From assembly GCA_004431415.1 (NCBI GenBank), contig QPMI01000252.1, forward strand, positions 1-64,000: a stretch of DNA of 64,000 nt, in the 5' to 3' direction. This DNA is from Cyanophora paradoxa CCMP329 (Eukaryota; Plantae; Glaucophyta). Under the pieces are notes generated by a model, which was given only the letters and a program-made list of their open reading frames with translations, was not told the DNA's origin and searched no databases. Below are positions 1-62,890 of this stretch, one piece after another. Both the position numbers and the translations under genes were made by a program. Every line of letters begins with the position of its first letter. The first letter of the stretch is position 1.

Positions 1-3000
1 CCCCGACGTCGAGGGCCCCCAGTCGCTCCCCACCCGCGCCGGCGGCCGCGTCTCCGTCTACGAGGCCGCCGACTCGGAGGACGAGGCCGAGTACGTCGTC
101 TCCAAGGTCCGCCCCGCCCCGCCTGACCCCGCCCCGCCGCCTTGCCCCGGCCCCGCCGCTGCCGAGCCCCGTCTCGTGCGGCAGATCGCGTCGCTGCTGG
201 AGAGCAAGGAGGCGGCGCCCGGCGAGATCGCCGTCCTCTTCCGCACCACCGCGCAGGGTGCGCCCCGCCCCGCCCCGCCCGCCCCGCGCCGGCGCCGGGG
301 CGCGGGGCCGACGCGGGGGCCAGCGGACGCGCTGCTGTCGGAGCTGGACGGGGCGGGGGTGCCGTTCCGCTTCCTCGGGGGCCACCACCTCTTCCGCCGC
401 CGCGAGGTCCGCGACATCATCGCCTACCTCCGCCTCATCCACAACCCCGACGACGAGGCCGCCATGGCCCGGGTCCGCCCCGCCCCGCCCCGCCCCGCCC
501 ACGCGAGCCGGCCGGGGCTGAGCGCGCCGAGCAGGTGATTAACGTGCCGGCGCGGGGCGTGAGCGACGCGACGTGGCGGGAGGTGCGCGCGTGGGCGCGC
601 TCGCGGCACCAGCCCGTCTTCGCGGCGTTGCGGGCGCTGGCGGGGGCGGGGGCGGCGGGGAGCGCCCCCGTGGAGCACCCGTTCGCCCCGCGCGTCGTCG
701 CCGGCCTGGCCACATTCTTCGAGGACATCTCCTCGCTCCGCGCCGGCGCCACCGGGGCCGACTCCGGCCGCTCCCCGAGCCCGGGCTCGGCCCCGCGGCA
801 CCGCCTGGGGAGCGCGGCGGAGGTGGCGCGGGGGGTGCTGGAGCGCGTGGGGTACGTGTCGTACCTGGAGGACCACTACGAGGCGGCGTCGAAGGGGCGG
901 CTGGGGACGCTGAACGAGTTCCTGCGGCGGCTCGAGGGGGAGTACGGGGCGCTGGGCGAGGCCGGCCTCGGCGTCCTCCTCCAGGACGTCGCCCTCTTCT
1001 CCGTCCGCCCGCCCCGCCCCCGCCCCTCGCCGCCGGTCGAGCGGGGCGGGGCGGGGGGCAGGACACGGACGACATGGACGGGCGGCGGCCGGCGGTGAGC
1101 CTGATGACGCTGCGCGCCTCGCGCGGCTTCGAGTTCAAGGCCGTCTTCGTCATGGGGCTCGCCGAGGGGACCCTCCCCGCCGCCGGCGCCGCCGACGACC
1201 CCGCCCTCATGGCCGAAGAGCGCCGTGCGCCCGCCCCGCCCGCCCGCCCGCCCGCCCGCCCGCCGGCTCGGAGCCGACTCGGGGCGCAGGGCTGGCGTAC
1301 ATGGCGATGACGCGGGCCAAGGAGCGCCTCGTGCTCTCGTACGCCGCGACGGCGGCCAAGAGCCACAGCCCGGCCGCCGCCGGCCTGCGCGGCGAGGCCC
1401 GCGTGCCCGTCGCCCGCTCCCGCTTCATCGACGACCTGCCCGGCTCGGTGGGCGTCACCCGCGCCGGCGACCGGAGCCGGGAGCTCGAGCGGGAGCAGAC
1501 GCTGGAGGAGCTGCTGGAGAACCTCCCGGGGGCGGACGACGACGAGCCCGACGCGCGGCCCGCCTCCCCGCCCCGCCCGCATCCGCCCGGGCTCCGCCGC
1601 CCTCGCCGGCCGCCGGCCCCGAAGGGCCGCACGGGTAGCGTCACCGTCGTCGACGGCAGCGGCTCCAGCCGCGTCCGCTCCCCGGCGCCCCGCTCCCCGT
1701 CGCCCCGCCGGGCCGCGTGCCCCTGCCCCTCACCGACGCCCCTTCCCTCAACGGCGCCTCGGTGCGCGTGCGGGCCGGGCCGGCGTCGGCCGCCGCCGCC
1801 GCCGCCGCGGCGGGGGCACCAGGGCTGGTGGAGGGGTCGGAGGGGGCGGTGGAGGGGGAGGGCGGGCGGACAAGTTCTTCGACCCGTTCGACCCGGAGGC
1901 GGAGCTGCCGGACGACGCGGAGATCGACGCGCTCTTCGAGAAGGAGATGGCGGAGAAGGGGAACACGGACGCGCTGGACCTGCTGCCCGAGCTCGACGAG
2001 GCGGAGCTGGCGGCGGGGCTCGACGACCTCGACCTCGACATCGACATCGACGAGATCCTGAAGAGCGTGACGGGCGTGGGCGAGGGCCTCGGCCTCGACG
2101 ACGACCTCGACTCGGGCGAGGTCCCCGCCGACACCGCCCTCCTCCAGAAGACCATCAAGGAGCTCCAGGAGGGCGGCCGCGCCGCCCGCGCCGACCTCGC
2201 CCTCGACGCCGACGAGGAGGAGGAGGAGGAGCTCGAGCTGGAGCTCGAGATCGAGGAGGAGGAGGAGGAGGGTGGGGCGCTGCTGGAGGGGGCCGGGGGC
2301 GGGGGCCTCGACATCGACGTGGCCGACCTCGAGGGCCTCGGCCTCGACGAGGACGACGAGGACGGCGACCTCCGGTCCGCCCTTTCTCCCTTCCCCCCGT
2401 CCGCCGCCGCCTGAGGCGGCCTCCCGCGCAGCACGATCCGGGCCGGCCGAAGAAGCGGGCGGTCGCGCAGCCGCTCAACTCGAGCCGGCGCGGCTTCCGC
2501 GCCACGGACGGGGACGAGGACGAGGAGGAGGAGGAGCTCGACCTCGAGCTCGCGGAGGATGACGAGGCGGGGCTGGCGCCGCGGGGCCCGGCCAAGGGCA
2601 AGGCCGGGGCGCGGGGCCGGCGGGAGGTGGAGGCGGGGGAGGAGGAGGAGGACGAGGACCTGGCGCTGCTGGACGAGGCGCCGAAGCGGGGCAAGAAGGG
2701 GGCGCAGCGGAAGCCGAGCCGGCGGTCGCGGTTCGTGGCGCGGGAGAAGACGCCGGCGCTCCCCGCCACCTTCGACTTCCGCACCTCGCCGAGAGCGGCG
2801 GCCGCCTCCACCGCCCGCCACCCGCACCCCGCCCAGATCGCCGCCCGCCGCGTCCGCCCGCCCCGCCCCGCCCCGCGCACCCGCCCCGCCCGCCTGACGG
2901 CGCCCGGGCCGGCAGATGGAGCCCGGGGAGCGCGTGGTGCACGAGCAGTTCGGGCCGGGGACGGTGGTCGGCTGCGGGCCCTCCCTCGACGGCAACGACC

Positions 3001-3750
3001 TCGAGCTCAAGATCGAGTTCGACAGCGGGCGCCGCAGCCGCCTCCTCGCGAGCGTGGCGAGCCTCGTGCGCGAGTCGAGCCTGGGCGAGCTGCCGCCGGC
3101 GGCCATCGCCGAGGAGGGCGAGCACGAGAGCGCCTTCGCCGCCGCGCGCCGCGCGGAGAGCGCCCAGCGCGCGAAGGCCGCGGTGGGGGCGCTGCCGGAG
3201 CCGGCGGTGATCGCGGAGCGGGCGCTGCGGGCGGTGGGGCGCAGGAGGCGCGGCGGGCGGGGCGGGGGAGGACGAGCTGGCGGGGCGGACCTCGAGCTGC
3301 TCGCCATGGACTCGGCCCGCGACTCCGTCGCCCTCTCCGCCCCGCCCCGGGCTCCCCCCCGGCGCCTCCTCCCCGTCCCGGCCCCTCGTCGCCCCCGCCG
3401 GCGCCCCCTCGGCCCCCGCGCCCCGGCCCCGGCGCGGCCCCGGCGGCGCCGTCGACGGTGCCGGCGGTGTCGGCGGGGCCGGCGACGGCGCCGGTCTTCG
3501 CGGCGGACCTCGCCCCGCCAGCGCCCTCCCGGCCTCCACCTCCCTCGCCGCCCGCCTCAAGGCCCGCGCCGGCTCCGCTCCCGCCGCCCCGTCCCGCCCC
3601 GCCCGCCAGGCCCCCCGCCCGCCCCGGCCCCGGTCCCGTGCAGGCCCCGCCGCCCCGGCGGGGCGCGCCAAGGGCAAGGCGAAGAAGAGCGCCGGGGAGG
3701 CGCCGGCGGACGGCGCCCCCAAGCGCCGCGGCCGCCCGCCCCGCGCGTGA
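1..3750 (+). CDS. UvrD/Rep/PcrA-like SF1A helicase, spliced, 5' part outside window. Acidic linker, Tudor-like C-terminal domain, terminal AT-hook-like motif
   Basis: Spliced exons give IAVLFRTTAQ (motif IV), GGHHLFRRREVRDIIAYLRLIHNP, VSLMTLRASRGFEFKAVFVMGL (motif V), EERRLAYMAMTRAKERLVLSY (motif VI), GERVVHEQFGPGTVV...KIEFDSG (PcrA/UvrD C-terminal domain) and PKRRGRPPRA* (TGA 3748-3750). GT-AG introns, e.g. 1003-1061. Confidence 0.88.
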
Positions 3751-3967
3751 GCCACGCCGCCTCGCCCCCGTTCAGACGTCAGATCTAGAGCCCGAGCCGT
3801 TTTGTCCCAGGCCGACCCTTTTTGATGCTTCACCGTGCTTTCTTTAGTTAGCGATCGGATGCGAATACGTACAGCAGCGCTGGAACCGGGCAGGAGGGGC
3901 CGGGAGAAAGGTTTGTTTGGGGCGGGCGGCGAGGTTCGGGGCGGTAGGGGTGCGCGCGGGGTCGACG

Positions 3968-5078
3968 TCAGCGGGGGCGGGCGGGGGCGGGGCGGCGGGG
4001 CTCGGGGGCGAGGGCGAGCTGGAGGGAGGCGCCGCGGAGGTCGGCGGTCGAGGAGGCGGTGAAGGCGAGGAGGGAGGCCACGAGGGCGTACTGCAGCAGC
4101 GCCCCCCACGCGTTCCGCTTCCGGCTCGCCCCGCTCTCCACCTTCCCAATGAGCGCGGGGAAGAGCGCCGGCCCTGCGCCCCGTCCGCGCGTTACGGGAC
4201 CGATCCGAGGGAGCTGGCCGAGGGGCCGGGGCGGGGCGCGCCGACGAAGAACAGGAAGAGGAGCACGCAGAGGATGAAGAGCTTGACGCGGTAGGCGGCG
4301 GCGCAGGGCGCGCTGGCGCGCAGGGCGCGCCAGACGTAGAGCGTCGCGCTGCAATGGAGAATGCCCGTTGAGAAGAATAAGCCGGCCATCGACTGGTGCA
4401 CCTGCGGCGCGCCGGCCCGGGAATCGAAGGCAGGATATCGATAGATGGGGCGGGAGCCCTCAGTGCACCTGTGACGCAATGGTGATTGGAATGTCCTCTC
4501 CCAGCAGTATCGCATCGGCGTCGGGCTGCATGGGGACGACTGCGTGCAGCGCGAGGAAGAGGCCAGAGAGGATGCCCGTGACCGTCGCAGTCAAGTTCGC
4601 GAGCCGCACGGCGCCCTCGTACGCGCCGAGCACGTCGAGCGCCTTTTCCTGGAGCGCGAGGAGCTGGAGGACCGCCGCCAACGCGAACAACGCCCCCGCC
4701 AGAGTGAAGCCCAAAGAGTAGACGTAGGACTCCGGCGCATGGTTGCTGCGCGCCGGCCGCACTCAAGGCGCGCGTGCACACGCGTACGCGTACGTACGCA
4801 TGCGCAACGACGTGCGCACCCTGTCAGCGAGATCGGCGGCGTGATGAAGCTGGTGTGGTGCAGGAGCTGGGTCAAGATGTAGCAGGTCACGATGGTCGCC
4901 CCAGCGATTGCGCAGCCTGCCGCCGGGACGAGGACAGCGGGTCCGAGGCGCCTGAGCACGCAGTGAACCCTGAGCCAACGAAAGCCCGAGCCCCCGAGCC
5001 GCACCGACTCACGCCACTCTCCTTGGCTGCCCTCGACGGGAGAAGCGCGACGCTGTCCTCGTCTGGCGCGGGCGCCAT
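3968..5078 (-). CDS. Frag1/DRAM/Sfk1 (TMEM150-like) multipass membrane protein, spliced, start uncertain
   Basis: Joined exons: ...TIVTCYILTQLLHHTSFITPPISLTG|NHAPESYVYSLGF...|VHQSMAGLFFSTG...VKLFILCVLLFLFFV|GPALF...GALLQYALVASLLAF. The PxISxxG..PES motif and about 6 hydrophobic segments fit the family. Confidence 0.7.
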
Positions 5079-5449
5079 TCCAGCAGCTCAGCAGCGTGCG
5101 CGGCGACCAGCAACTTTAGCAAACGATCGGCCTGTGCTGAGGCGCCGGCCTTGGCTTTGCAGCGCTTGCTCTGCGGGGGGCTACCGAATCTTCCGGCCGT
5201 TTCCTTGTTGCGGCTCAGGTGCCGTAGGAAGGCCACAAAAGGCACTGCGAGCCTCGGGAAAGCTACAGGAAGGCCGAGGCCAGCATCCAGACGCGCCATC
5301 AGCCCTCCGACGGTTGATCCCCCCGGAGACAAGTTCGGAGCTCAGTTCGGAGACAAGGATGGCGCCGGCTCGGCCCAAAGCGCTACATGTGACAGCAGCT
5401 TCGACGAGGAACAGCTTTTAGCCGGCTGGCCAAATGACGCTCGCCGCTC

Positions 5450-7536
5450 ATGCCGAAGATGACCTCGACCAGAAGCTACGCTCACCGCCGCGACAACAGG
5501 CACCGAAGTTTGGAAGGGTGCGCAGAAATCCCTGTTAGACCTTCTGGCGGCCACCAGGCCGAGTCTCGGCGCAGAGATCAGCGGCGGCGCAATCGGACTC
5601 GGAATTCTCCGAGGCGGGAGCCCCGGACCGGCCCGCAGAGGCCCGATACCGCTGCACGCCTCGCGAGAGCGGCTGGGGACGCCGCTGCAGTACGCGAGGC
5701 GGCAGACGGTGGCGGTGCCGGGCTTCCGCCGCTCCTTCCTCGCCCAGATAGCGCACAGCGAAGACGAGCACGAGGCGGCGGGGCGGCGGAGGGCGAGCCG
5801 GAGCGGGCCGGGCGGCGGGCTGCGGCGGCCGTCGCCGCCGAGGAGCCGGCGCGGGGCGCGCTGGAGGCGCTGGCCATGGAGGCGGGCCCGCGGAAGCCGC
5901 GGCGGGTGCTCCCGTGGGAGGAGCCGCGTCGGCTCGAGGAGGCGCGCCGGCGCGCGGCGGAGGAGGCGAGCGCCTCGGGCCTGCAGCCGCCGCGCCGCCA
6001 CGGGGCGGAGAGCGGCGAGAGCAGCGACGGGCGGGACGAAGAGGCGCACGCGGCGGCGGGCGGGGGCGGCGGGGCGGCGGGGCGCTCGCGGCCGGCTCGC
6101 CGCGGCGGGCGGACGCGGGGATCCTGAGGCGGCGGCTCGGGAGCTGCGGGGGGCGGCGTCGGCGGCGGAGCACCCGAACGGGCCGTCTCGGAGCGCGGCC
6201 ACCACCGCAACGTGAGCTTCGATGGCCGCGCCGACGCCGGCGGCGGCGAGGGGGCGAGCAGCGGCCCATGCGCCACGCCCGCAGCGAGCGGCTGCGCTCG
6301 CTGGCGAGCAGCCGGGCGGAGAGCCCGTCGTCGCGCGCCCAGTCCCCCGCCTCGTCAGCGGCGGCCTCGGCCTCGGGCCGGGCCCGGGGGCGGGCGCGAG
6401 CCTCAGGGCCTCCACGTCGTGCCGCGGGCGGCGTGGGGCGAGGTGCAGCTGCTGCGGCAGGTCGGCTCGGGGGCGACGGCGGACGTGTACGAGGGGGAGT
6501 GGCGGGGCCAGCGGGTGGCGGTGAAGCGCTTCCTGTACCGGTGCGAGGAGTTCACGCGGGAGGAGGTGGAGCGCTTCCGCAACGAGGCGGCCGTGCTCGA
6601 GCGCCTCCGCCACGCCGCCGTCGCCCGCCTCCTCGCCGTCGGCGACCGCCCCCGCACCTCTTCCTCCTCACCGAGCTCTGCCCCGCCGGCACCCTCGCCG
6701 ACGCCCTCCGCGCCCGCGCCGACGCCGGCCGCCGCTTCACCGCCGGCGAGGCCGCCGCGGTGGGCGCGGCCGTGGCCCGCGCCCTCGCGTACCTCCACTC
6801 GCGCCAGCCGCGCGTCGTCCACCGCGACGTCCGCCCGCCCCGCCCCCCGCCCCGCCCGCCCGCCCCGCGCCCCGCCGACGGGCCCGCGCGGGCGCAGGTG
6901 AAGCCGGCGAACGTGCTGCTCGGCGCCGACGGCGAGTGGCGCCTCGCCGACTTCGGGAGCGCGACGCACCTGCAGACGGCGGCGGGGCGGGGGCCCGCCG
7001 GCGCCCGCGCCGTCAGCGTGAAGCGGCGCATGGGCGACGAGGGCTCCTTCTTCTACCTCGCCCCGGGTGCGGCCCCCCGCGCCGCGCCCCCGCCCCGTCC
7101 CCCTGACCGGGGCGCAGAGGTGATCCGGGACGAGCCGGCGGACGAGAAGGTCGACGTCTACTCCCTCGGCATGGCGCGCCCGCACCCCCGCCCCCGCCCC
7201 CGGGGCCGGGCGCGCGCTGACGGGTGCGCAGCTGCTGTACGAGGCGGCGACGGGGCGGCGGCCGTTCGAGGGGAGCGGCCTGGCGCCGATGGCGGCCTCG
7301 CTGGCGGCCGCCACAGAGGGCCTCCGCCCGGCGCTCCCCGAGGAGGGCCCCGCGGCCGCCTGGCGCCCGTGATCCGGGCCTGCTGGGCGCACGAGCCGGA
7401 CGCGCGCCCCTCCGCCGCCGACGCCTTCCGCCTCCTCGACGAGCTCGCCCGGCCCCGCCTCCCCCTGCCCCTCTCCCCCGGCACCCCCGCCGCGCCCCTC
7501 CTCCCTCCCCAACGGCCCCCGCCCCTCCTCCACTAG
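5450..7536 (+). CDS. TKL/Raf-like protein kinase, spliced, N-terminus uncertain
   Basis: VGSGATADVYEGEWRGQRVAVK, FRNE, HRD|VKPANVLL, LADFG, YLAP|EV, KVDVYSLGM|LLYE, RACWAHEPDARP; stop TAG at 7536. Confidence 0.88.
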
Positions 7537-7776
7537 CCCCCGCCCGGCCCCTCCGGAGCCGGCATCCTTCATGCGCTTCCGACGGCGTCGGCGTCGCCAT
7601 TCTAAGGCGGCGATGGCCCCGCCCTCCAATTTTGCAAAGCTTTAGGCACAGGCCTCTGTACCTAGGTATTCGTTTGGAGCTTATTTGCATCTGTACGCTG
7701 TGAATTTATGGTATCCATCTCGTACGCGTGCGACCGGTACCGGAGCTCGATCGCGAGGGGCTCGCCGAGCCTCGGA

Positions 7777-7990
7777 GAAGAGTCGAGGGGGGCGAGCTCG
7801 AGAGGAAGCGCTAGCTCGAGGGCCCGGGCCGGGGAGGGGCGGGGAGGGGTGGCCCGGCGGGGGCCCGGGCGAGCTCGAGCTCGAGGCCGAGCTCGAGGGG
7901 CCCGGAGGGCGAAGAGTCGAGGGGGGCGAGCTAGCGCTCGCGATCGAGAGGAAGCCTTGAAGCTCGAGGGAGGGGCGGGGGGAGGGGCCC
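7777..7990. repeat. Degenerate ~134-bp tandem duplication rich in GAGCTC/CTCGAG, upstream of the GNAT gene
   Basis: GAAGAGTCGAGGGGGGCGAGCT at 7777-7798 and 7911-7932; CGAGAGGAAGC also occurs twice. Confidence 0.55.
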
Positions 7991-8093
7991 GGAGGGAGGT
8001 GTCGGGAAGGGGGTACCGGTGCACGTGCATAAGAAACTGCCCGGCCGCGGCCAGCTAGCGCTGCGCCTGCGCAGTCTGCAATCGAGCGCGCCC

Positions 8094-8839
8094 ATGGCCT
8101 CGGAACCACAGCTGCACTTGAGCTTCCGGCACCCGACGCTGGCGGACCTGCCGGCGCTGGCCGCGCTCGAGGCCGCCTCCTATCCCGCCGACGAGGCAGC
8201 CAGCGAGACGCAGCTGAAATACCGCATCGAGCACGCCAACGACCTCTTCCTCCTCGCCGAGGTGCCCCAACCGCGCTTCAAACCCCCGCCGCGCGCGCCA
8301 CGCCATTTTCCGCCTCCCGCCGCCGCGCTCGCGGGCTAATTATGACCGCGGGCGCTCCGCGCGGGCAGGACGCGGAAGGTCTAGCAGGTTTCGTCTGCGC
8401 GACGGCCTCCTGGGACACGAGCCTCACGCACCACTCGATGCGGCACCACGACGCCGACGGCGAGAGCGTGAACATCCACTCGGTCGTCACGCGGCACGCC
8501 CTCCGGCGCCGCGGCGTCGCGCTGCGCATGCTGCGGGAGTACGAGGCGTGGATGCGGGCCGGCGGGGCGCGGCGGCGGCTCCTGCTCATCACCAAGGCGG
8601 ACGTGCAGCCGCTCTACGAGAAGGCCGGCTTCACCTTCAGGGGCGTCAGCCCCGTCGTCCACGGTCCGCCCCGCCCCAGCGCGTCGCCCGGCCATGCGCT
8701 CCGCCTGCCACTTACGCCCCCGGGGCCCCTAGGGGAGACGCCCTGGTCCGTGCACGTGCCGGACGCGCGCCGGAGCGGGTTTCCCTCACCATGACCGCCC
8801 CCGCGCCGCAGGAACGAGATGCACCTCGAGCTGGCGTGA
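8094..8839 (+). CDS. Arylalkylamine/polyamine N-acetyltransferase-like GNAT (AANAT/PAA1 family), 4 exons
   Basis: LAALEAASYPADEAAS..LKYRI, GFVCAT, VNIHSVVTRHALRRRGVA, LLLITK..LYEKAGF, VVH|GETPW|NEMHLELA*. Includes a 13-nt microexon at 8733-8745. Confidence 0.88.
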
Positions 8840-9357
8840 GGGGCCGGCCCAGCGCCCGCCCACTCGCCCGCCCGCTCGCCGCGCCCGCCTGCTGGCGTCC
8901 CGCCCACCAAGACGCCGCAGAGCGAGCCCGAGCGCGGTCCGCATCCCTGTCTTTAACTGATTGGCGCCCCTCCGTTCGGCCCGCGACCTCCCTGTGCAGC
9001 CGCGGCGGTCTTAACAGCGAGCGCTAGCCTCGGAGCCGTAGAGGCGACCCGCGGCCGCCCGGCGGCCTTCGCTCCCGGGCCGGGGCCGGCGCGCACTTCG
9101 CGGAGACCTCGCGTGCGCCCGACCTTTAAACTCTACGATAGCCGCTTTCACTCTGCCATACGCAAATGTAACTGTCTGCATAGCAATACGTATATGCTCG
9201 TTACGTGCTAACTTAGTAAGGTTATACCCTCTAGATCTAGCACGGCAAAACACCGAGAGAACCGTGAGTGAAGCCGTGAAGCGAACTAGCGACTCTAGGG
9301 AACTAGTCAAATCGAAGTAAGGTACCTAGGGGCCCACGCCGCCTGCTAGGGATCTAG

Positions 9358-10846
9358 GAGCGCATTCTGGTCCAAAATTAATACAGCAATTGGGTTGGGA
9401 ATTATGTGTTGTGTGATGGCGCAGCGAGGGGGGCAGCGGGCTAGGCGACAGATAGCAGTAATGGAGGTTGCATGCTACTGAACACGATACATTAGGCGGC
9501 GTCTAGCCCCGTCACCATCGGTTTTCGACCACTGCGGGCGCGGGATTCGCGGCGCGGGATCGGCAAGACAGCTACACGAGTGCTAGGGAATCGGCGCGCA
9601 TAGGTCCTTTTTGCTAGCGGATCCCCGCTGCGCGCCCGCGCGCCAAGGTCCCGCGCGCCCGCTTGCGGAGGGGGGGGACAGCGATTCCGTCATGCAGTCC
9701 GCGCTGCTAGCGCTCTGGTCGCGTTATGCATGCGCGGTACAGCGCAACGATTGCGTTGTGTACCGCTTCGGGTCCTCCGCGCTGCCGCCGCCGCGCCAGC
9801 GCCGGTTTTGGGGCTGCCCAAAACCGGGGGGGACAGCGTTACGAGGCACCAGCTCCAGCCACACATCGCCCGGTGTGCGAAACGCTCGAGCGCGTCGCAC
9901 TCCCCAGGCGCCGCCGCTGTATCTGGCGCCTCCATCTGGCCCCGCTCGCCGCCGCAGTACACGCCGCACATCGCGGCACATGTACAGCTACTGCTATAGG
10001 TCCGTGGCTCACTTTGCATCGTGCTCGGTTCGCTCACCGCGGGCGATCCGGCGCGGCGCATCTGGCGGTTCGTCGCCCTCGCGCCGCCGCCGCATGTCAA
10101 TGCGATCCCGTGCGCGCTCCATCACGAGCCGAAAAGCCGGCGCTGAGGTCTGCACACGCCCGCGCCGCCCCCTGCGCCGAGCGCCGACCGCGGCCTGCCC
10201 GCGCTCATTTGCGCAGGGCGATCTCCGTTACCGCGCGTGCTCTGGGGGCACCTCGCCGTCGACGCATGGGACTCAATGGCTGCTGGCGTCTTGCGCAGTC
10301 AGAGCCAGGATCGCCGACGAGCTGCAGCATGCCGCCCCATGCCCTGCGCGCGCGCGCTTCGCCACAACCACGTATCCGCGGTGCGCGGGCCAGCCGCCTT
10401 TGCCCGCTCTTTGATATTCAATCGGAGGGTCTTTTTGAGCGTGGCGTCAGCCACGCTGGACGCCGCTCGCGCAGGGATCCCGCCCCCCGCCGCCCCGCCA
10501 ACCACGTACCCCGGTACGAGGCCCGGCCCGCGCCCCCGGCCCTGGCTCTGCCGGGCGGGGCCTTAGTGCCGCGCCCGGTGGGCCGCCGAATCGCTTGGGA
10601 GACGGCGCTGAACGCTGCTCCCGCAGGGCCCCCGCCCCACACCCCGGCTCTCCGTCGCCCCGCCAACCACGTACCCCGGTACGAGGCCCGGCCCGCGCCC
10701 CCGGCCCTGGCTCTGCCGGGCGGGGCTCTAGTGCCGCGCCCGGAGGGCCGCCGAATCGCTTGGGAGGCGGCGCTGAACGCTGCTCCCGCAGGGACCCCGC
10801 CCCCCGCCTCCCCGCCCCCCCGCCAACCACGTACCCCGGTACGAGG
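9358..10846 (+). repeat. Left long inverted-repeat arm (~1.49 kb, no recognisable coding content)
   Basis: Matches the reverse complement of 19861-21301 with a handful of substitutions and homopolymer indels. Confidence 0.9.
10490..10846 (+). repeat. ~160-165-bp internal tandem repeats of the arm (2 full units + partial)
   Basis: CCAACCACGTACCCCGGTACGAGG begins at 10498, 10663 and 10823. Mirrored units lie at about 19861-20165. Confidence 0.88.
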
Positions 10847-10864
10847 TACGAGGCCCCCGTACCC

Positions 10865-13555
10865 CGGCGGCCGGCGGTGAGCCTGATGACGCTGCGCGCC
10901 TCGCGCGGCTTCGAGTTCAAGGCCGTCTTCGTCATGGGGCTCGCCGAGGGGACCCTCCCCGCCGCCGGCGCCGCCGACGACCCCGCCCTCATGGCCGAAG
11001 AGCGCCGTGCGCCCGCCCCGCCCGCCCGCCCCGCCCGCCCGCCCCGCCGGCTCGGAGCCGACTCGGGGGCGCAGGGCTGGCGTACATGGCGATGACGCGG
11101 GCCAAGGAGCGCCTCGTGCTCTCGTACGCCGCGACGGCGGCCAAGAGCCACAGCCCGGCCGCCGCCGGCCTGCGCGGCGAGGCCCGCGTGCCCGTCGCCC
11201 GCTCCCGCTTCATCGACGACCTGCCCGGCTCGGTGGGCGTCACCCGCGCCGGCGACCGGAGCCGGGAGCTCGAGCGGGAGCAGACGCTGGAGGAGCTGCT
11301 GGAGAACCTCCCGGGGGCGGACGACGACGAGCCCGACGCGCGGCCCGCCTCCCCCGCCCCGCCCCGCATCCGCCCGGGCTCCGCCGCCCTCGCCGGCCGC
11401 CGGCCCCCGAAGGGCCGCACGGGTAGCGTCACCGTCGTCGACGGCAGCGGCTCCAGCCGCGTCCGCTCCCCGGCGCCCCGCTCCCCGTCGCCCCCGCCGG
11501 GCCGCGTGCCCCTGCCCCTCACCGACGCCCCTTCCCTCAACGGCGCCTCGGTGCGCGTGCGGGCCGGGCCGGCGTCGGCCGCCGCCGCCGCCGCCGCGGC
11601 GGGGGCACCAGGGCTGGTGGAGGGGTCGGAGGGGGCGGTGGAGGGGGAGGGCGGGGCGGACAAGTTCTTCGACCCGTTCGACCCGGAGGCGGAGCTGCCG
11701 GACGACGCGGAGATCGACGCGCTCTTCGAGAAGGAGATGGCGGAGAAGGGGAACACGGACGCGCTGGACCTGCTGCCCGAGCTCGACGAGGCGGAGCTGG
11801 CGGCGGGGCTCGACGACCTCGACCTCGACATCGACATCGACGAGATCCTGAAGAGCGTGACGGGCGTGGGCGAGGGCCTCGGCCTCGACGACGACCTCGA
11901 CTCGGGCGAGGTCCCCGCCGACACCGCCCTCCTCCAGAAGACCATCAAGGAGCTCCAGGAGGGCGGCCGCGCCGCCCGCGCCGACCTCGCCCTCGACGCC
12001 GACGAGGAGGAGGAGGAGGAGCTCGAGCTGGAGCTCGAGATCGAGGAGGAGGAGGAGGAGGGTGGGGCGCTGCTGGAGGGGGCCGGGGGCGGGGGCCTCG
12101 ACATCGACGTGGCCGACCTCGAGGGCCTCGGCCTCGACGAGGACGACGAGGACGGCGACCTCCGGTCCGCCCCTTTCTCCCTTCCCCCCCGTCCGCCGCC
12201 GCCTGAGGCGGCCTCCCGCGCAGCACGATCCGGGCCGGCCCGAAGAAGCGGGCGGTCGCGCAGCCGCTCAACTCGAGCCGGCGCGGCTTCCGCGCCACGG
12301 ACGGGGACGAGGACGAGGAGGAGGAGGAGCTCGACCTCGAGCTCGCGGAGGATGACGAGGCGGGGCTGGCGCCGCGGGGCCCGGCCAAGGGCAAGGCCGG
12401 GGCGCGGGGCCGGCGGGAGGTGGAGGCGGGGGAGGAGGAGGAGGACGAGGACCTGGCGCTGCTGGACGAGGCGCCGAAGCGGGGCAAGAAGGGGGCGCAG
12501 CGGAAGCCGAGCCGGCGGTCGCGGTTCGTGGCGCGGGAGAAGACGCCGGCGCTCCCCGCCACCTTCGACTTCCGCACCCTCGCCGAGAGCGGCGGCCGCC
12601 TCCACCGCCCCGCCACCCGCACCCCCGCCCAGATCGCCGCCCGCCGCGTCCGCCCCGCCCCCGCCCCGCCCCGCGCACCCGCCCCGCCCGCCTGACGGCG
12701 CCCGGGCCGGCAGATGGAGCCCGGGAGCGCGTGGTGCACGAGCAGTTCGGGCCGGGGACGGTGGTCGGCTGCGGGCCCTCCCTCGACGGCAACGACCTCG
12801 AGCTCAAGATCGAGTTCGACAGCGGGCGCCGCAGCCGCCTCCTCGCGAGCGTGGCGAGCCTCGTGCGCGAGTCGAGCCTGGGCGAGCTGCCGCCGGCGGC
12901 CATCGCCGAGGAGGGCGAGCACGAGAGCGCCTTCGCCGCCGCGCGCCGCGCGGAGAGCGCCCAGCGCGCGAAGGCCGCGGTGGGGGCGCTGCCGGAGCCG
13001 GCGGTGATCGCGGAGCGGGCGCTGCGGGCGGTGGGGCGCAGGAGGCGCGGCGGGCGGGGCGGGGAGGACGAGCTGGCGGGGGCGGACCTCGAGCTGCTCG
13101 CCATGGACTCGGCCCGCGACTCCGTCGCCCTCTCCGCCCCCGCCCCGGGCTCCCCCCCGGCGCCTCCTCCCCGTCCCGGCCCCTCGTCGCCCCCGCCGGC
13201 GCCCCCTCGGCCCCCCGCGCCCCGGCCCCGGCGCGGCCCCGGCGGCGCCGTCGACGGTGCCGGCGGTGTCGGCGGGGCCGGCGACGGCGCCGGTCTTCGC
13301 GGCGGACCTCGCCCCCGCCAGCGCCCTCCCGGCCTCCACCTCCCTCGCCGCCCGCCTCAAGGCCCGCGCCGGCTCCGCCTCCCGCCGCCCCGTCCCGCCC
13401 CGCCCCGCCAGGCCCCCCCGCCCGCCCCGGCCCCGGTCCCCGTGCAGGCCCCGCCGCCCCCGGCGGGGCGCGCCAAGGGCAAGGCGAAGAAGAGCGCCGG
13501 GGAGGCGCCGGCGGACGGCGCCCCCAAGCGCCGCGGCCGCCCGCCCCGCGCGTGA
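10865..13555 (+). pseudogene. 5'-truncated duplicate of the UvrD-like helicase (motif V onward)
   Basis: Begins at the duplication junction just before motif V and lacks motifs I-IV. Confidence 0.8.
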
Positions 13556-13772
13556 GCCACGCCGCCTCGCCCCCGTTCAGACGTCAGATCTAGAGCCCGA
13601 GCCGTTTTGTCCCAGGCCGACCCTTTTTGATGCTTCACCGTGCTTTCTTTAGTTAGCGATCGGATGCGAATACGTACAGCAGCGCTGGAACCGGGCAGGA
13701 GGGGCCGGGAGAAAGGTTTGTTTGGGGCGGGCGGCGAGGTTCGGGGCGGTAGGGGTGCGCGCGGGGTCGACG

Positions 13773-14885
13773 TCAGCGGGGGCGGGCGGGGGCGGGGCGG
13801 CGGGGCTCGGGGGCGAGGGCGAGCTGGAGGGAGGCGCCGCGGAGGTCGGCGGTCGAGGAGGCGGTGAAGGCGAGGAGGGAGGCCACGAGGGCGTACTGCA
13901 GCAGCGCCCCCCACGCGTTCCGCTTCCGGCTCGCCCCGCTCTCCACCTTCCCAATGAGCGCGGGGAAGAGCGCCGGCCCTGCGCCCCGTCCCGCGCGTTA
14001 CGGGACCGATCCGAGGGAGCTGGCCGAGGGGGCCGGGGCGGGGCGCGCCGACGAAGAACAGGAAGAGGAGCACGCAGAGGATGAAGAGCTTGACGCGGTA
14101 GGCGGCGGCGCAGGGCGCGCTGGCGCGCAGGGCGCGCCAGACGTAGAGCGTCGCGCTGCAATGGAGAATGCCCGTTGAGAAGAATAAGCCGGCCATCGAC
14201 TGGTGCACCTGCGGCGCGCCGGCCCGGGAATCGAAGGCAGGATATCGATAGATGGGGCGGGAGCCCTCAGTGCACCTGTGACGCAATGGTGATTGGAATG
14301 TCCTCTCCCAGCAGTATCGCATCGGCGTCGGGCTGCATGGGGACGACTGCGTGCAGCGCGAGGAAGAGGCCAGAGAGGATGCCCGTGACCGTCGCAGTCA
14401 AGTTCGCGAGCCGCACGGCGCCCTCGTACGCGCCGAGCACGTCGAGCGCCTTTTCCTGGAGCGCGAGGAGCTGGAGGACCGCCGCCAACGCGAACAACGC
14501 CCCCGCCAGAGTGAAGCCCAAAGAGTAGACGTAGGACTCCGGCGCATGGTTGCTGCGCGCCGGCCGCACTCAAGGCGCGCGTGCACACGCGTACGCGTAC
14601 GTACGCATGCGCAACGACGTGCGCACCCTGTCAGCGAGATCGGCGGCGTGATGAAGCTGGTGTGGTGCAGGAGCTGGGTCAAGATGTAGCAGGTCACGAT
14701 GGTCGCCCCAGCGATTGCGCAGCCTGCCGCCGGGACGAGGACAGCGGGTCCGAGGCGCCTGAGCACGCAGTGAACCCTGAGCCAACGAAAGCCCGAGCCC
14801 CCGAGCCGCACCGACTCACGCCACTCTCCTTGGCTGCCCTCGACGGGAGAAGCGCGACGCTGTCCTCGTCTGGCGCGGGCGCCAT
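13773..14885 (-). CDS. Frag1/DRAM-like membrane protein, second copy
   Basis: Duplicate of 3968-5078. Confidence 0.68.
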
Positions 14886-15256
14886 TCCAGCAGCTCAGCA
14901 GCGTGCGCGGCGACCAGCAACTTTAGCAAACGATCGGCCTGTGCTGAGGCGCCGGCCTTGGCTTTGCAGCGCTTGCTCTGCGGGGGGCTACCGAATCTTC
15001 CGGCCGTTTCCTTGTTGCGGCTCAGGTGCCGTAGGAAGGCCACAAAAGGCACTGCGAGCCTCGGGAAAGCTACAGGAAGGCCGAGGCCAGCATCCAGACG
15101 CGCCATCAGCCCTCCGACGGTTGATCCCCCCGGAGACAAGTTCGGAGCTCAGTTCGGAGACAAGGATGGCGCCGGCTCGGCCCAAAGCGCTACATGTGAC
15201 AGCAGCTTCGACGAGGAACAGCTTTTAGCCGGCTGGCCAAATGACGCTCGCCGCTC

Positions 15257-17348
15257 ATGCCGAAGATGACCTCGACCAGAAGCTACGCTCACCGCCGCGA
15301 CAACAGGCACCGAAGTTTGGAAGGGTGCGCAGAAATCCCTGTTAGACCTTCTGGCGGCCACCAGGCCGAGTCTCGGCGCAGAGATCAGCGGCGGCGCAAT
15401 CGGACTCGGAATTCTCCGAGGCGGGAGCCCCGGACCGGCCCGCAGAGGCCCCGATACCGCTGCACGCCTCGCGAGAGCGGCTGGGGACGCCGCTGCAGTA
15501 CGCGAGGCGGCAGACGGTGGCGGTGCCGGGCTTCCGCCGCTCCTTCCTCGCCCAGATAGCGCACAGCGAAGACGAGCACGAGGCGGCGGGGGCGGCGGAG
15601 GGCGAGCCGGAGCGGGCCGGGCGGCGGGCTGCGGCGGCCGTCGCCGCCGAGGAGCCGGCGCGGGGCGCGCTGGAGGCGCTGGCCATGGAGGCGGGCCCGC
15701 GGAAGCCGCGGCGGGTGCTCCCGTGGGAGGAGCCGCGTCGGCTCGAGGAGGCGCGCCGGCGCGCGGCGGAGGAGGCGAGCGCCTCGGGCCTGCAGCCGCC
15801 GCGCCGCCACGGGGCGGAGAGCGGCGAGAGCAGCGACGGGCGGGACGAAGAGGCGCACGCGGCGGCGGGCGGGGCGGCGGGGCGGCGGGGCGCTCGCGGC
15901 CGGGCTCGCCGCGGCGGGCGGACGCGGGGATCCTGAGGCGGCGGCTCGGGGAGCTGCGGGGGCGGCGTCGGCGGCGGAGCACCCGAACGGGGCCGTCTCG
16001 GAGCGCGGCCACCACCGCAACGTGAGCTTCGATGGCCGCGCCGACGCCGGCGGCGGCGAGGGGGCGAGCAGCGGCCCATGCGCCACGCCCGCAGCGAGCG
16101 GCTGCGCTCGCTGGCGAGCAGCCGGGCGGAGAGCCCGTCGTCGCGCGCCCAGTCCCCCGCCTCGTCAGCGGCGGCCTCGGCCTCGGGCCCGGGCCCGGGG
16201 GCGGGCGCGAGCCTCAGGGGCCTCCACGTCGTGCCGCGGGCGGCGTGGGGCGAGGTGCAGCTGCTGCGGCAGGTCGGCTCGGGGGCGACGGCGGACGTGT
16301 ACGAGGGGGAGTGGCGGGGCCAGCGGGTGGCGGTGAAGCGCTTCCTGTACCGGTGCGAGGAGTTCACGCGGGAGGAGGTGGAGCGCTTCCGCAACGAGGC
16401 GGCCGTGCTCGAGCGCCTCCGCCACGCCGCCGTCGCCCGCCTCCTCGCCGTCGGCGACCGCCCCCCGCACCTCTTCCTCCTCACCGAGCTCTGCCCCGCC
16501 GGCACCCTCGCCGACGCCCTCCGCGCCCGCGCCGACGCCGGCCGCCGCTTCACCGCCGGCGAGGCCGCCGCGGTGGGCGCGGCCGTGGCCCGCGCCCTCG
16601 CGTACCTCCACTCGCGCCAGCCGCGCGTCGTCCACCGCGACGTCCGCCCGCCCCGCCCCCCGCCCCGCCCGCCCGCCCCGCGCCCCGCCGACGGGCCCGC
16701 GCGGGCGCAGGTGAAGCCGGCGAACGTGCTGCTCGGCGCCGACGGCGAGTGGCGCCTCGCCGACTTCGGGAGCGCGACGCACCTGCAGACGGCGGCGGGC
16801 GGGGGCCCGCCGGCGCCCGCGCCGTCAGCGTGAAGCGGCGCATGGGCGACGAGGGCTCCTTCTTCTACCTCGCCCCGGGTGCGGCCCCCCGCGCCGCGCC
16901 CCCGCCCCGTCCCCCTGACCGGGGCGCAGAGGTGATCCGGGACGAGCCGGCGGACGAGAAGGTCGACGTCTACTCCCTCGGCATGGCGCGCCCGCACCCC
17001 CGCCCCCGCCCCGGGGCCGGGCGCGCGCTGACGGGTGCGCAGCTGCTGTACGAGGCGGCGACGGGGCGGCGGCCGTTCGAGGGGAGCGGCCTGGCGCCGA
17101 TGGCGGCCTCGCTGGCGGCCGCCACAGAGGGCCTCCGCCCGGCGCTCCCCGAGGAGGGCCCCGCGGCCGCCCTGGCGCCCGTGATCCGGGCCTGCTGGGC
17201 GCACGAGCCGGACGCGCGCCCCTCCGCCGCCGACGCCTTCCGCCTCCTCGACGAGCTCGCCCGGCCCCGCCTCCCCCTGCCCCTCTCCCCCGGCACCCCC
17301 GCCGCGCCCCTCCTCCCTCCCCAACGGCCCCCGCCCCTCCTCCACTAG
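15257..17348 (+). CDS. TKL/Raf-like kinase, second copy
   Basis: Duplicate of 5450-7536. ORF 16078-16833 carries the kinase N-lobe through DFG without a break. Confidence 0.85.
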
Positions 17349-17905
17349 CCCCCGCCCGGCCCCTCCGGAGCCGGCATCCTTCATGCGCTTCCGACGGCGT
17401 CGGCGTCGCCATTCTAAGGCGGCGATGGCCCCGCCCTCCAATTTTGCAAAGCTTTAGGCACAGGCCTCTGTACCTAGGTATTCGTTTGGAGCTTATTTGC
17501 ATCTGTACGCTGTGAATTTATGGTATCCATCTCGTACGCGTGCGACCGGTACCGGAGCTCGATCGCGAGGGGCTCGCCGAGCCTCGGAGAAGAGTCGAGG
17601 GGGGCGAGCTCGAGAGGAAGCGCTAGCTCGAGGGCCCGGGCCGGGGAGGGGCGGGGAGGGGTGGCCCGGCGGGGGCCCGGGCGAGCTCGAGCTCGAGGCC
17701 GAGCTCGAGGGGCCCGGAGGGCGAAGAGTCGAGGGGGGCGAGCTAGCGCTCGCGATCGAGAGGAAGCCTTGAAGCTCGAGGGAGGGGCGGGGGGAGGGGC
17801 CCGGAGGGAGGTGTCGGGAAGGGGGTACCGGTGCACGTGCATAAGAAACTGCCCGGCCGCGGCCAGCTAGCGCTGCGCCTGCGCAGTCTGCAATCGAGCG
17901 CGCCC

Positions 17906-18651
17906 ATGGCCTCGGAACCACAGCTGCACTTGAGCTTCCGGCACCCGACGCTGGCGGACCTGCCGGCGCTGGCCGCGCTCGAGGCCGCCTCCTATCCCGC
18001 CGACGAGGCAGCCAGCGAGACGCAGCTGAAATACCGCATCGAGCACGCCAACGACCTCTTCCTCCTCGCCGAGGTGCCCCAACCGCGCTTCAAACCCCCG
18101 CCGCGCGCGCCACGCCATTTTCCGCCTCCCGCCGCCGCGCTCGCGGGCTAATTATGACCGCGGGCGCTCCGCGCGGGCAGGACGCGGAAGGTCTAGCAGG
18201 TTTCGTCTGCGCGACGGCCTCCTGGGACACGAGCCTCACGCACCACTCGATGCGGCACCACGACGCCGACGGCGAGAGCGTGAACATCCACTCGGTCGTC
18301 ACGCGGCACGCCCTCCGGCGCCGCGGCGTCGCGCTGCGCATGCTGCGGGAGTACGAGGCGTGGATGCGGGCCGGCGGGGCGCGGCGGCGGCTCCTGCTCA
18401 TCACCAAGGCGGACGTGCAGCCGCTCTACGAGAAGGCCGGCTTCACCTTCAGGGGCGTCAGCCCCGTCGTCCACGGTCCGCCCCGCCCCAGCGCGTCGCC
18501 CGGCCATGCGCTCCGCCTGCCACTTACGCCCCCGGGGCCCCTAGGGGAGACGCCCTGGTCCGTGCACGTGCCGGACGCGCGCCGGAGCGGGTTTCCCTCA
18601 CCATGACCGCCCCCGCGCCGCAGGAACGAGATGCACCTCGAGCTGGCGTGA
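17906..18651 (+). CDS. AANAT/PAA1-like GNAT, second copy
   Basis: Duplicate of 8094-8839. Confidence 0.85.
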
Positions 18652-19171
18652 GGGGCCGGCCCAGCGCCCGCCCACTCGCCCGCCCGCTCGCCGCGCCCGC
18701 CTGCTGGCGTCCCGCCCACCAAGACGCCGCAGAGCGAGCCCCGAGCGCGGTCCGCATCCCTGTCTTTAACTGATTGGCGCCCCTCCGTTCGGCCCGCGAC
18801 CTCCCTGTGCAGCCGCGGCGGTCTTAACAGCGAGCGCTAGCCTCGGAGCCGTAGAGGCGACCCGCGGCCGCCCGGCGGCCTTCGCTCCCCGGGCCGGGGC
18901 CGGCGCGCACTTCGCGGAGACCTCGCGTGCGCCCGACCTTTAAACTCTACGATAGCCGCTTTCACTCTGCCATACGCAAATGTAACTGTCTGCATAGCAA
19001 TACGTATATGCTCGTTACGTGCTAACTTAGTAAGGTTATACCCTCTAGATCTAGCACGGCAAAACACCGAGAGAACCGTGAGTGAAGCCGTGAAGCGAAC
19101 TAGCGACTCTAGGGAACTAGTCAAATCGAAGTAAGGTACCTAGGGGCCCACGCCGCCTGCTAGGGATCTAG

Positions 19172-21301
19172 GAGCGCATTCTGGTCCAAAATTAATACAG
19201 CAATTGGGTTGGGAATTATGTGTTGTGTGATGGCGCAGCGAGGGGGGCAGCGGGCTAGGCGACAGATAGCAGTAATGGAGGTTGCATGCTACTGAACACG
19301 ATACATTAGGCGGCGTCTAGCCCCGTCACCATCGGTTTTCGACCACTGCGGGCGCGGGATTCGCGGCGCGGGATCGGCAAGACAGCTACACGAGTGCTAG
19401 GGAATCGGCGCGCATAGGTCCTTTTTGCTAGCGGATCCCCGCTGCGCGCCCGCGCGCCAAGGTCCCGCGCGCCCGCTTGCGGAGGGGGGGACAGCGATTC
19501 CGTCATGCAGTCCGCGCTGCTAGCGCTCTGGTCGCGTTATGCATGCGCGGTACAGCGCAACGATTGCGTTGTGTACCGCTTCGGGTCCTCCGCGCTGCCG
19601 CCGCCGCGCCAGCGCCGGTTTTGGGGCTGCCCAAAACCGGGGGGGACAGCGTTACGAGGCACCAGCTCCAGCCACACATCGCCCGGTGTGCGAAACGCTC
19701 GAGCGCGTCGCACTCCCCAGGCGCCGCCGCTGTATCTGGCGCCTCCATCTGGCCCCGCTCGCCGCCGCAGTACACGCCGCACATCGCGGCACATGTACAG
19801 CTACTGCTATAGGTCCGTGGCTCACTTTGCATCGTGCTCGGTTCGCTCACCGCCGCTCACCGGGGTCCCTGCGGGAGCAGCGTTCAGCGCCGCCTCCCAA
19901 GCGATTCGGCGGCCCTCCGGGCGCGGCACTAGAGCCCCGCCCGGCAGAGCCAGGGCCGGGGGCGCGGGCCGGGCCTCGTACCGGGGTACGTGGTTGGCGG
20001 GGCGACGGAGAGCCGGGGTGTGGGGCGGGGGCCCTGCGGGAGCAGCGTTCAGCGCCGCCTCCCAAGCGATTCGGCGGCCCACCGGGCGCGGCACTAAGGC
20101 CCCGCCCGGCAGAGCCAGGGCCGGGGGCGCGGGCCGGGCCTCGTACCGGGGTACGTGGTTGGCGGGGCGGCGGGGGCGGGATCCCTGCGCGAGCGGCGTC
20201 CAGCGTGGCTGACGCCACGCTCAAAAAGACCCTCCGATTGAATATCAAAGAGCGGGCAAAGGCGGCTGGCCCGCGCACCGCGGATACGTGGTTGTGGCGA
20301 AGCGCGCGCGCGCAGGGCATGGAGGCGGCATGCTGCAGCTCGTCGGCGATCCTGGCTCTGACTGCGCAAGACGCCAGCAGCCATTGAGTCCCATGCGTCG
20401 ACGGCGAGGTGCCCCCAGAGCACGCGCGGTAACGGAGATCGCCCTGCGCAAATGAGCGCGGGCAGGCCGCGGTCGGCGCTCGGCGCAGGGGCGGCGCGGG
20501 CGTGTGCAGACCTCGGCGCCGGCTTTTCGGCTCGTGATGGAGCGCGCACGGGATCGCGTTGACATGCGGCGGCGGCGCGAGGGCGACGAACCGCCAGATG
20601 CGCCGCGCCGGATCGCCCGCGGTGAGCGAACCGAGCACGATGCAAAGTGAGCCACGGACCTATAGCAGTAGCTGTACATGTGCCGCGATGTGCGGCGTGT
20701 ACTGCGGCGGCGAGCGGGGCCAGATGGAGGCGCCAGATATAGCGGCGGCGCCTGGGGAGTGCGACGCGCTCGAGCGTTTCGCACACCGGGCGATGTGTGG
20801 CTGGAGCTGGTGCCTCGTAACGCTGTCCCCCCCGGTTTTGGGCAGCCCCAAAACCGGCGCTGGCGCGGCGGCGGCAGCGCGGAGGACCCGAAGCGGTACA
20901 CAGCGCAATCGTTGCGCTGTACCGCGCATGCATAACGCGACCAGAGCGCTAGCAGCGCGGACTGCATGACGGAATCGCTGTCCCCCCCCTCCGCAAGCGG
21001 GCGCGCGGGACCTTGGCGCGCGGGCGCGCAGCGGGGATCCGCTAGCAAAAAGGACCTATGCGCGCCGATTCCCTAGCACTCGTGTAGCTGTCTTGCCGAT
21101 CCCGCGCCGCGAATCCCGCGCCCGCAGTGGTCGAAAACCGATGGTGACGGGGCTAGACGCCGCCTAATGTATCGTGTTCAGTAGCATGCAACCTCCATTA
21201 CTGCTATCTGTCGCCTAGCCCGCTGCCCCCCTCGCTGCGCCATCACACAACACATAATTCCCAACCCAATTGCTGTATTAATTTTGGACCAGAATGCGCT
21301 C
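19172..21301. mobile_element. Nested 2.13-kb element with ~680-bp terminal inverted repeats and TAG TSD (truncated left arm joined to right arm)
   Basis: TAG at 19169-19171, GAGCGCATTC from 19172; 19172-19853 is inverted at about 20620-21301; TAG at 21302-21304. Confidence 0.8.
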
Positions 21302-21638
21302 TAGTGTCCCTGATAGCCGCCGCTCGCGGCGTGGAGATCTAACTCCAAATTTAGTCGACGAAACTTGAAAGTTGAAACTGCGCAAAATTGCGAATGAGAT
21401 AGACTGAATCTAGATCTAGATCTAGCTATGGTCGAAACTTGATCATGAAATAGGAAATAGCACTGCACAAAACTGTACGCGACATTCTCGAGCGCGTACT
21501 ACGCGTACGGTATGCCCTCGTAAATGTGGCAACTTGGCAACATAAAAAAAAGGGGTTCGCAAGGGCGGGCGGGCGGCGGGGGCCGGGCCGGCCGCGGGGC
21601 GGGCTCCGGATCCGAGGCTCGTGATCACAATCCGATGA

Positions 21639-23306: not shown

Positions 23307-24672
23307 ATGGCGGAGGCGGGGGAAGCCTCGCCGGCGAAGGCAGCCGATGGCGGAGGCGAGGATGTCCAGCAGAGGCCGAGCGAAGCTGACGTTGTCGATA
23401 GGAAGGCGAACCGGGAGCGCGGTGATCGCAAGGAGAGCCGACGGAGCCGCAGCCGGTCGAGGTCGCCCAGCCGGAAGAAGCGCTCTCGTTCGCGGTCGAA
23501 GGACAGGCGGCGGCGGCGGCGTAGCAAGTCGCGTTCGCGTAGCAGAGACCGTCGTTCCCGTTCTCGCAACCGACGTTCCCGCTCCCGTTCGCGAAAGGAT
23601 GGCAAGGATGGCACGCCCAATGACAAGACCCCTGGACAGCCTGCCGAGCCTGCACAGCCGTCTCCGGAAGAGCTAGCGGCGAGGGAGGCCGAGCGCGAGC
23701 GAGCGGAGGAAGAGCGGAAGGTGCGCCGGACACGGGCCAACCCATTGCACCGCGAAGCTGACGCGCTCGCTGGGCAGGCCCGCGAAGCTAAGGAGAAGGC
23801 GGATAGGGAAGAGCGCGAGCGCAAGGAAGAGGAGAACATGTCAGAGCTTGACCGGTTGAGGCGGCAGAAGCTGCGCGAGATCCAAGTGCAGCGCGAGAAC
23901 GAGATGAAGTGCGCACAGCCATTCGCATGCTGCGGCCTGGCTCGGGCCGACCCGGCTGCGCGCGCAGGGCGGAGCGGGAGTTTCGCGAGCGCGAGCGCCA
24001 GTTCGAGGCGAGGGAGCGCGAGAAGGCCCGGGACCGCGAGCGGGAGCGGGAGCGGGACAAGGACCGCATACGCGAGGAGGAGAGCGCGCGGCGGAGGTGC
24101 GCCCGGCGCGTGCCGCGTCGGCGTGTTCGCGGGGGCCGATGCGGGGCCGGGGCGCAGGTACCGGGAGTCGAGCTCGGAGGAGGACGAGCGGGACCTGTCG
24201 CCGCGGCGCGTGAAGCGGCGCGAGGAGCGCCGCGCCGAGCGCCGCAAGCTTCGCCAGAAGGAGCGTGAGGAGGACGAGCTCGACCGCCAGGTCGAGGCCG
24301 AGGTGCCGCCCCGCCCGCGCCCCGCGGCCCGCGGCGGGCTCCGCCGACGCGCCTGCGCAGGACGTCAAGTGGGAGGAGGAGGAGGCGCGCCGGCGGGAAG
24401 AGAAGGAGCGCCTGGCGCGGGAGCGGGCCGAGGCGGTGCGGGGGGTCCCGAGTGGGCGGGGCGCGGGGGCGGGGCTGACGGGCGGGGCAGGAGGCGGAGC
24501 GGAAGCGGAAGGAGGCGGAGGCGGCGGCGGCGGAGGAGCGGCGGCGGTTCGAGGAGCGGATGATGGCGGAGCTCGCGGCGCAGGAGGCGGAGCGCAAGCA
24601 GAAGGAGGCCGAGGCCGAGGCGCGCGCCGCCGCCGAGCGCGCCGCCCGCGCCGCCATCTTCCAGGACTACGC

Positions 24673-24706
<34 letters not shown>

Positions 24707-62840: not shown

Positions 62841-62890
<50 letters not shown>

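Follow-up and report, generated by a model that had tools for sequence, protein, structure and literature searches.

Pack-TIRs are DNA transposons in which host DNA is enclosed between the terminal inverted repeats (TIRs) of one element. In animals, single-copy Pack-TIRs arise mainly through gap filling in cis, and 57% of them lie less than 15 kb from their donor; microhomology is found in 68%, and the median cargo is 224 bp (Tan et al. 2021, PMC8277862). Host genes can also be taken up by template switching and then multiplied, as in Ssk-FB4 of Drosophila melanogaster (FoSTeST; PMC8277862), a long-armed, repeat-bearing, non-autonomous element that has moved to three sites with 9–10 bp duplications and has microhomology at one of its junctions and an insertion at the other. 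In maize, Ac/fAc composite insertions hold 14–24 kb of copied flanking DNA bounded by transposon sequence, with a microhomology junction inside; they arise through reversed-ends transposition and sit at a new site flanked by a newly made target duplication (Zhang et al. 2014, PMC4270019). Pack-MULE and Pack-CACTA elements are non-autonomous TIR elements that hold host gene DNA (PMC6379663, PMC8903248). Here we describe a locus of the glaucophyte alga Cyanophora paradoxa CCMP329 (contig QPMI01000252.1 of assembly GCA_004431415.1, of which positions 1–64,000 form the 64,000-nucleotide window analysed) where a long-armed transposon encloses a copy of the adjacent host DNA, including three whole genes. 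The evidence supports a capture that is real, very recent and in place, and that probably took place in one event by template switching.

The locus is a gap-filling single-copy Pack-TIR: non-transposon host DNA lies between the two ends of a single TIR element that has a target duplication, the parental copy is identifiable in cis (the adjacent donor, 1083–10040), and microhomology (CGG, CG) and templated filler lie at breakpoints internal to the element. Like its animal counterparts, it has an internal deletion filled with a copy of nearby DNA, exists as a single copy and lies near its donor. It differs from them in its host, in its IS3EU/GingerRoot-type ends and in its cargo, which at 8,958 bp is 40 times the median of 224 bp and comprises three whole intron-containing genes together with the element's own left end. 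The capture mechanism is known in kind, and the scale is unusually large. An earlier, sequence-only reading of this DNA had presented the element as a departure from Pack-MULEs, which overstated its novelty: among single-copy Pack-TIRs, uptake of nearby DNA by a broken TIR element that remains next to its donor is the route most often described (PMC8277862). The 6-bp duplication sets the element apart from Pack-MULEs and Pack-CACTA elements (8–11 or 3 bp), as do its ends, which are not CACTA, and its cargo of whole genes from an adjacent locus. It resembles Ssk-FB4 in its arms and in the apparent route of uptake, but has a 6-bp duplication, several genes and no movement shown; the loaded element was not found at new sites, as a multicopy FoSTeST-type Pack-TIR would be, and the cargo is present at no more than about twice single copy, at one locus. 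In contrast to the maize insertions, its junctions lie inside the arms and it stands at its original site. Within an incomplete literature coverage, neither the capture of cargo by IS3EU elements nor TIR elements of Cyanophora came up in any paper.

Self-alignment bore out the overall structure that had been proposed for the locus (Table 1). The inverted arms, put at 1.44 kb or more in the earlier reading, align over 9358–10799 and 19861–21301 with 5 substitutions and 3 indels, and the predicted copy of the upstream tract lies between them with no substitution relative to its donor. As also predicted, the copy runs into the start of the element's own left arm, giving an internal third partial arm (19172–19853). 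At 9756 and 9919 this segment has the bases of the left arm, which identifies that arm as its template; at 9756 the left arm's allele is private, the family as a whole having C, the right-arm base. Donor and copy differ by 45 one-base indels, nearly all in runs of G or C, with about 37 single-base losses in the first copy (1083–9343) versus about 8 in the second (10865–19157). These indels are homopolymer errors of the long-read consensus (PacBio RSII, Canu and Quiver, from an alga that is probably haploid; PMC6704402), because read contigs carry the second copy's extra C at 8926 and 9073 and because, where the first copy has broken kinase and helicase frames, the second restores them. Real divergence between the copies was therefore rejected, and, the losses being of sequencing type, the apparent frameshifts in the first copies of the kinase and helicase genes are assembly errors rather than pseudogenisation. 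The cargo exists in two copies only, and depth hints at no third.

Both junctions have the form of repair joints. At junction 1, past 10846, the preceding bases are repeated over 7 nt, another short copy from the same repeat unit follows, and CGG comes next; at junction 2, the copy stops at the position equivalent to 10040. At each, the template of the filler lies within 30 nt in the left partner. Both arms break inside 165-bp arrays, within about 50 nt of one mirror position (1,503 and 1,455 bp kept), and the final 9 nt of the tract match, in reverse complement, 1092–1100 at its start (p 0.001–0.008 against random positions, calculated post hoc); two more filler bases extend the match. Short templated insertions with minimal priming are a hallmark of polymerase-theta end joining (PMC12426944), and the filler suggests that a polymerase-theta-like process made these joints.

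The outer ends of the element lie beyond those given in the sequence-only reading, which had placed the termini at GAGCGC and read TAG as the target duplication. In all 4 runs of short reads, including one from 2012, the flank contig stops at 9372, and 31-mers common to other loci start at 9343, not at about 9358 (adjacent contigs overlap by 30 letters); the flank contig is the same in all four. In run X11, a shared contig extends 14 letters past the right arm (21302–21315). Because of these flank contig ends and the 14 extra shared letters, the ends of the family are placed at 9344 and 21315, each 14 bp outside the earlier ones. With a terminus at 9358, a merge at 9343 would have a probability of about 2e-9 under random flanks. 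TAG is thus internal, the 14 bp beyond it being common to copies at both ends, and the empty site proposed earlier (AGGGATC-TAG-TGTCCCT) is part of the element. Although positions 9344–9347 all fit the contig boundary, it is the pair 9344/21315, among all boundary pairs tried, that gives a 6-bp direct repeat, GCCGCC, together with equal 14-bp tips; a 6-bp match at two random ends has a probability of 0.001, and no pair gave a longer flanking repeat. The 6-bp duplication is known from one locus, and a 5-bp reading is disfavoured. The outer tips read TGCTAGGGATCTAG and TAGTGTCCCTGATA. Excising 9344–21315 in silico restores a hairpin across the empty site (9329–9343 joined to 21322–21334), with a perfect 9-bp stem and a 5-nt loop, the insertion lying at the loop side; this could mean a target preference, or reflect the genome's abundance of micro-palindromes. 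The density of CTAG across the flanks and the outer arm (9150–9720 and 21316–21560) is 10–30 times that of the rest of the window.

The element belongs to a multi-copy family. Arm contigs have 27–35 times single-copy depth, and there are therefore about 30 arms, or about 15 elements, in the genome. The arm terminus word occurs three times, where none is expected by chance, and searching viral and metagenome contigs for the terminus gave no match. The open reading frames of the arms have no homologue, no entry in the protein collection and no transposase, and an Rfam scan of the window returned nothing. 165-bp tandem arrays with G4-like motifs lie in both arms; array length and unit sequence differ among arms, and at 10808 (runs X19 and X11) other copies exit the array into a 26-nt hairpin-like word that resembles the palindrome at 9802–9827.

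The ends resemble those of IS3EU/GingerRoot transposons rather than Foldback or MULE elements. IS3EU elements end in TA..TA and usually make 6-bp duplications (PMC10045372); in their sister group GingerRoot the ends are for the most part TA..TA and now and then TG..CA (PMC12730594). Here the duplication is likewise 6 bp, the right end is of the TA type (it reads TAT) and the left is TG, as occasionally in GingerRoot. By contrast, the combination is a mixed TG..TA pair, and a 14-bp imperfect tip is followed by a perfect inverted repeat of more than 1.4 kb with satellite arrays. The assignment, drawn from the ends and the duplication, is tentative. Other superfamilies fit less well. A 3-bp TAG duplication, as in PIF/Harbinger or CACTA, is ruled out by the 14 bp common to copies beyond it, and Foldback and MULE elements (FB4, Pack-MULE), with duplications of 8–11 bp, by the longest flanking repeat of 6 bp. 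For hAT elements, YAGGG-like termini are present (TAGGGA at 9347, CAGGGA at 21312), but the 8-bp flanks mismatch. The Foldback label of the earlier reading holds only as a description of architecture, namely long inverted arms with internal tandem repeats and no coding capacity.

We consider it probable that a single repair event filled a gap in place with neighbouring DNA, because filler and 2–3 nt of microhomology are found at both junctions and a 9-nt inverted repeat links the tract ends. The one-event template switch put forward in the sequence-only reading thus finds support as to capture in place, and is probable as to the single event. The insertion site, the missing centre, the upstream copy, the filler and the microhomology can be read from the locus; the order of events would be as follows. 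A young, gene-less member of the long-armed family, moved in trans, inserted at GCCGCC. Its centre was later lost, perhaps through an excision gap or a break at the palindrome, and both ends would have stalled or been trimmed to the 165-bp arrays. The left 3′ end may then have slipped twice on its own repeat and primed 9.8 kb upstream through 3 nt of microhomology, from where synthesis would have run for 8,958 bp, across three genes and into the left end of the element again. Finally, the new strand would have paired with its own start through the 9-nt inverted repeat and joined the right arm by 2 nt of microhomology. The outcome, still at the donor locus, is a local three-gene duplication bracketed by transposon ends.

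The same final sequence would also be reached in two steps, by an ordinary 9.8-kb tandem duplication (1083–10846, with one breakpoint inside the element) and then an independent internal deletion downstream, making the 'Pack' geometry a by-product of any such duplication. Internal deletions are frequent in long-armed elements, and junction 2 would also fit a local slip of 10 nt with one additional C. However, the two copies have no substitutions between them, the deletion would have had to stop exactly at the 9-nt inverted repeat of the tract's start, and the arms break at mirrored positions. On balance, we regard the two-step route as unlikely.

Whether the assembly can be trusted was judged from short-read contigs of the 2012 run and three 2024 runs placed on 8300–11900, with contig depth taken as a rough measure. 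In run X11, the first letter of one contig falls at 10865, precisely where the copy begins; a break is expected there because two different upstream neighbours meet at that point. In the three 2024 runs, tract contigs have 1.4–1.8 times the median depth of other-locus contigs and 1.5–2.0 times the estimated depth of adjacent upstream DNA, with agreement among all three. The duplication is therefore supported as real, rather than an assembly artefact, at the left junction. Junction 1 is supported by reads indirectly, and junction 2 is known from the assembly and from its form.

Several observations weigh against a single in-place capture as we read it. In X1 and X18, one contig passes 1083 from upstream unbroken, although graph cleaning can cause such merging. 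Among the 15 of 162 joints listed, no contig crosses junction 1 and junction 2 is absent from the read contigs on 8300–11900. Arm contigs cross 10040 unbroken, as would be expected if a 1-in-30 branch had been pruned, and the depth ratios of the tract stay below 2. Part of this would be explained if the duplication and junction 1 were real and junction 2 were a mis-join through the long palindrome, hiding a full-length downstream element; the long-read assembly does have visible errors in the region. Consensus errors, however, do not make the templated repeat of junction 2, and the arms, which differ by 5 substitutions, switch cleanly there, so that such a mis-join appears improbable. That the whole duplication stems from a chimeric read is very improbable and largely refuted: the copies do differ by sequencing-type indels only, and the contigs unbroken over 1083 would fit, but the X11 break at 10865, the raised depth of the tract in three runs and the biological form of the junction 1 filler speak against it. 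Alternative transposition, as in the maize insertions (PMC4270019), or a Pack-CACTA-style fusion of neighbouring insertions, with cargo held between two partial elements (PMC6379663), is equally remote and is refuted at this locus: both new junctions lie deep inside the arms rather than at termini, there is no new terminus–flank junction with a new target duplication, and the internal left end shares the outer end's flank, marking it as a copy and not a second insertion.

The cargo genes were scanned exon by exon against Pfam rather than as joined spliced models. The helicase half has UvrD_C and PcrA Tudor domains, the kinase gene has a protein kinase match (E 7e-25) and the acetyltransferase gene a GNAT match (E 2e-11), in agreement with the earlier helicase and kinase assignments and, at the level of GNAT, with the putative AANAT one; the DRAM/Frag1 match is weak (E 0.04–0.08 in three collinear exons). 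All three whole genes were doubled together with their upstream DNA, and the GNAT exon matches published model g6706 on contig tig00001065 of the 2019 assembly, with g6712, from one cluster with it, as the second copy. Junction 1 sets the arm repeats in frame with the helicase half. The published model g6707 (858 aa, 9980–13555) is a predicted chimera of transposon arm and UvrD C-terminal half, with a 20-nt first exon in the arm (9980–9999) and a second exon running from 10791 through the repeats and junction 1. The parental helicase (1–3750) is UvrD/PcrA-like, has a lengthy acidic stretch and ends in a PcrA Tudor domain at the C terminus; its layout is of bacterial type though the algal gene has introns, and the protein is possibly organelle-targeted. 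Elsewhere in the window are a PWI-domain (RBM25-like) gene at 23307–25426, a Pumilio-like gene on the minus strand at 25930–27234, recognised by 108-nt repeats, and a run of about 45 G at 62845–62890.

Table 1 Features of the loaded element and its donor (positions in the window)
Feature	Position	Strand	Remarks
Donor tract	1083..10040	+	host DNA 1083–9343 and the element's first 697 bp
Left target-site duplication	9338..9343	+	GCCGCC
Whole element	9344..21315	.	11,972 bp; ends TGCTAGGGA...TCCCTGATA
Left arm	9344..10846	+	1,503 bp; asymmetric tip of 14 bp, inverted repeat starting at 9358, 165-bp tandem array 10479–10846
Junction 1	10847..10867	+	18-nt filler with the neighbouring repeat unit as template; next, microhomology of 3 nt (CGG) with 1083
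Captured copy of 1083–10040	10865..19853	+	direct repeat by self-alignment; 8,958 bp copied
3′ half of UvrD/PcrA-like helicase gene (copy)	10865..13555	+	in frame with arm repeats
Frag1/DRAM-like membrane protein gene, whole	13773..14885	-	copy of 3968–5078; weak collinear Pfam matches
Protein kinase gene, whole	15241..17348	+	copy of about 5434–7536; start codon uncertain
GNAT acetyltransferase gene, whole	17906..18651	+	copy of 8094–8839; models g6706 and g6712
Nested unit	19158..21315	.	2,158 bp; copied left end and right arm; GCCGCC flanks on both sides
Junction 2	19844..19861	+	copied-tract end, short templated repeat (GCTCACCG twice), 2-nt microhomology CG with the right arm
Right arm	19861..21315	-	1,455 bp; 165-bp array 19861–20173, 14-bp asymmetric tip
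Right target-site duplication	21316..21321	+	GCCGCC

Two nested units, of 11,972 bp and 2,158 bp, each flanked by GCCGCC, use one right end. The shorter would compete with the longer for a transposase, and the 9-kb direct repeats may collapse to the shorter unit. The earlier proposal that the loaded element could be moved in trans was overstated in this respect: it sits at one locus, and the nested unit offers the same end pair. Nothing shows that the element has moved since the capture, and its mobility is unproven. It is a long shot that the 12-kb unit is a transposition-competent IS3EU/GingerRoot-type element, a one-event carrier of three intact expressed genes and an arm–helicase fusion that a resident transposase could mobilise in culture. 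If that were true, the locus would be the birth stage of large, multi-gene IS3EU-like elements.

The acquisition of whole genes by cut-and-paste transposons is usually deduced from old, decayed copies. Here the donor and its copy, together with the two junctions and the two ends, stand intact and identical in a probably haploid alga kept in culture, so that the route can be read base by base. The corrected ends would move the family from a TAG-duplication class to the little-studied IS3EU/GingerRoot type, and the locus indicates that as much as 9 kb, with several whole genes, can be loaded together by gap filling, 40 times the animal median. What happens next, whether the element moves or collapses and whether the extra genes are silenced or expressed, may be watched as it happens.

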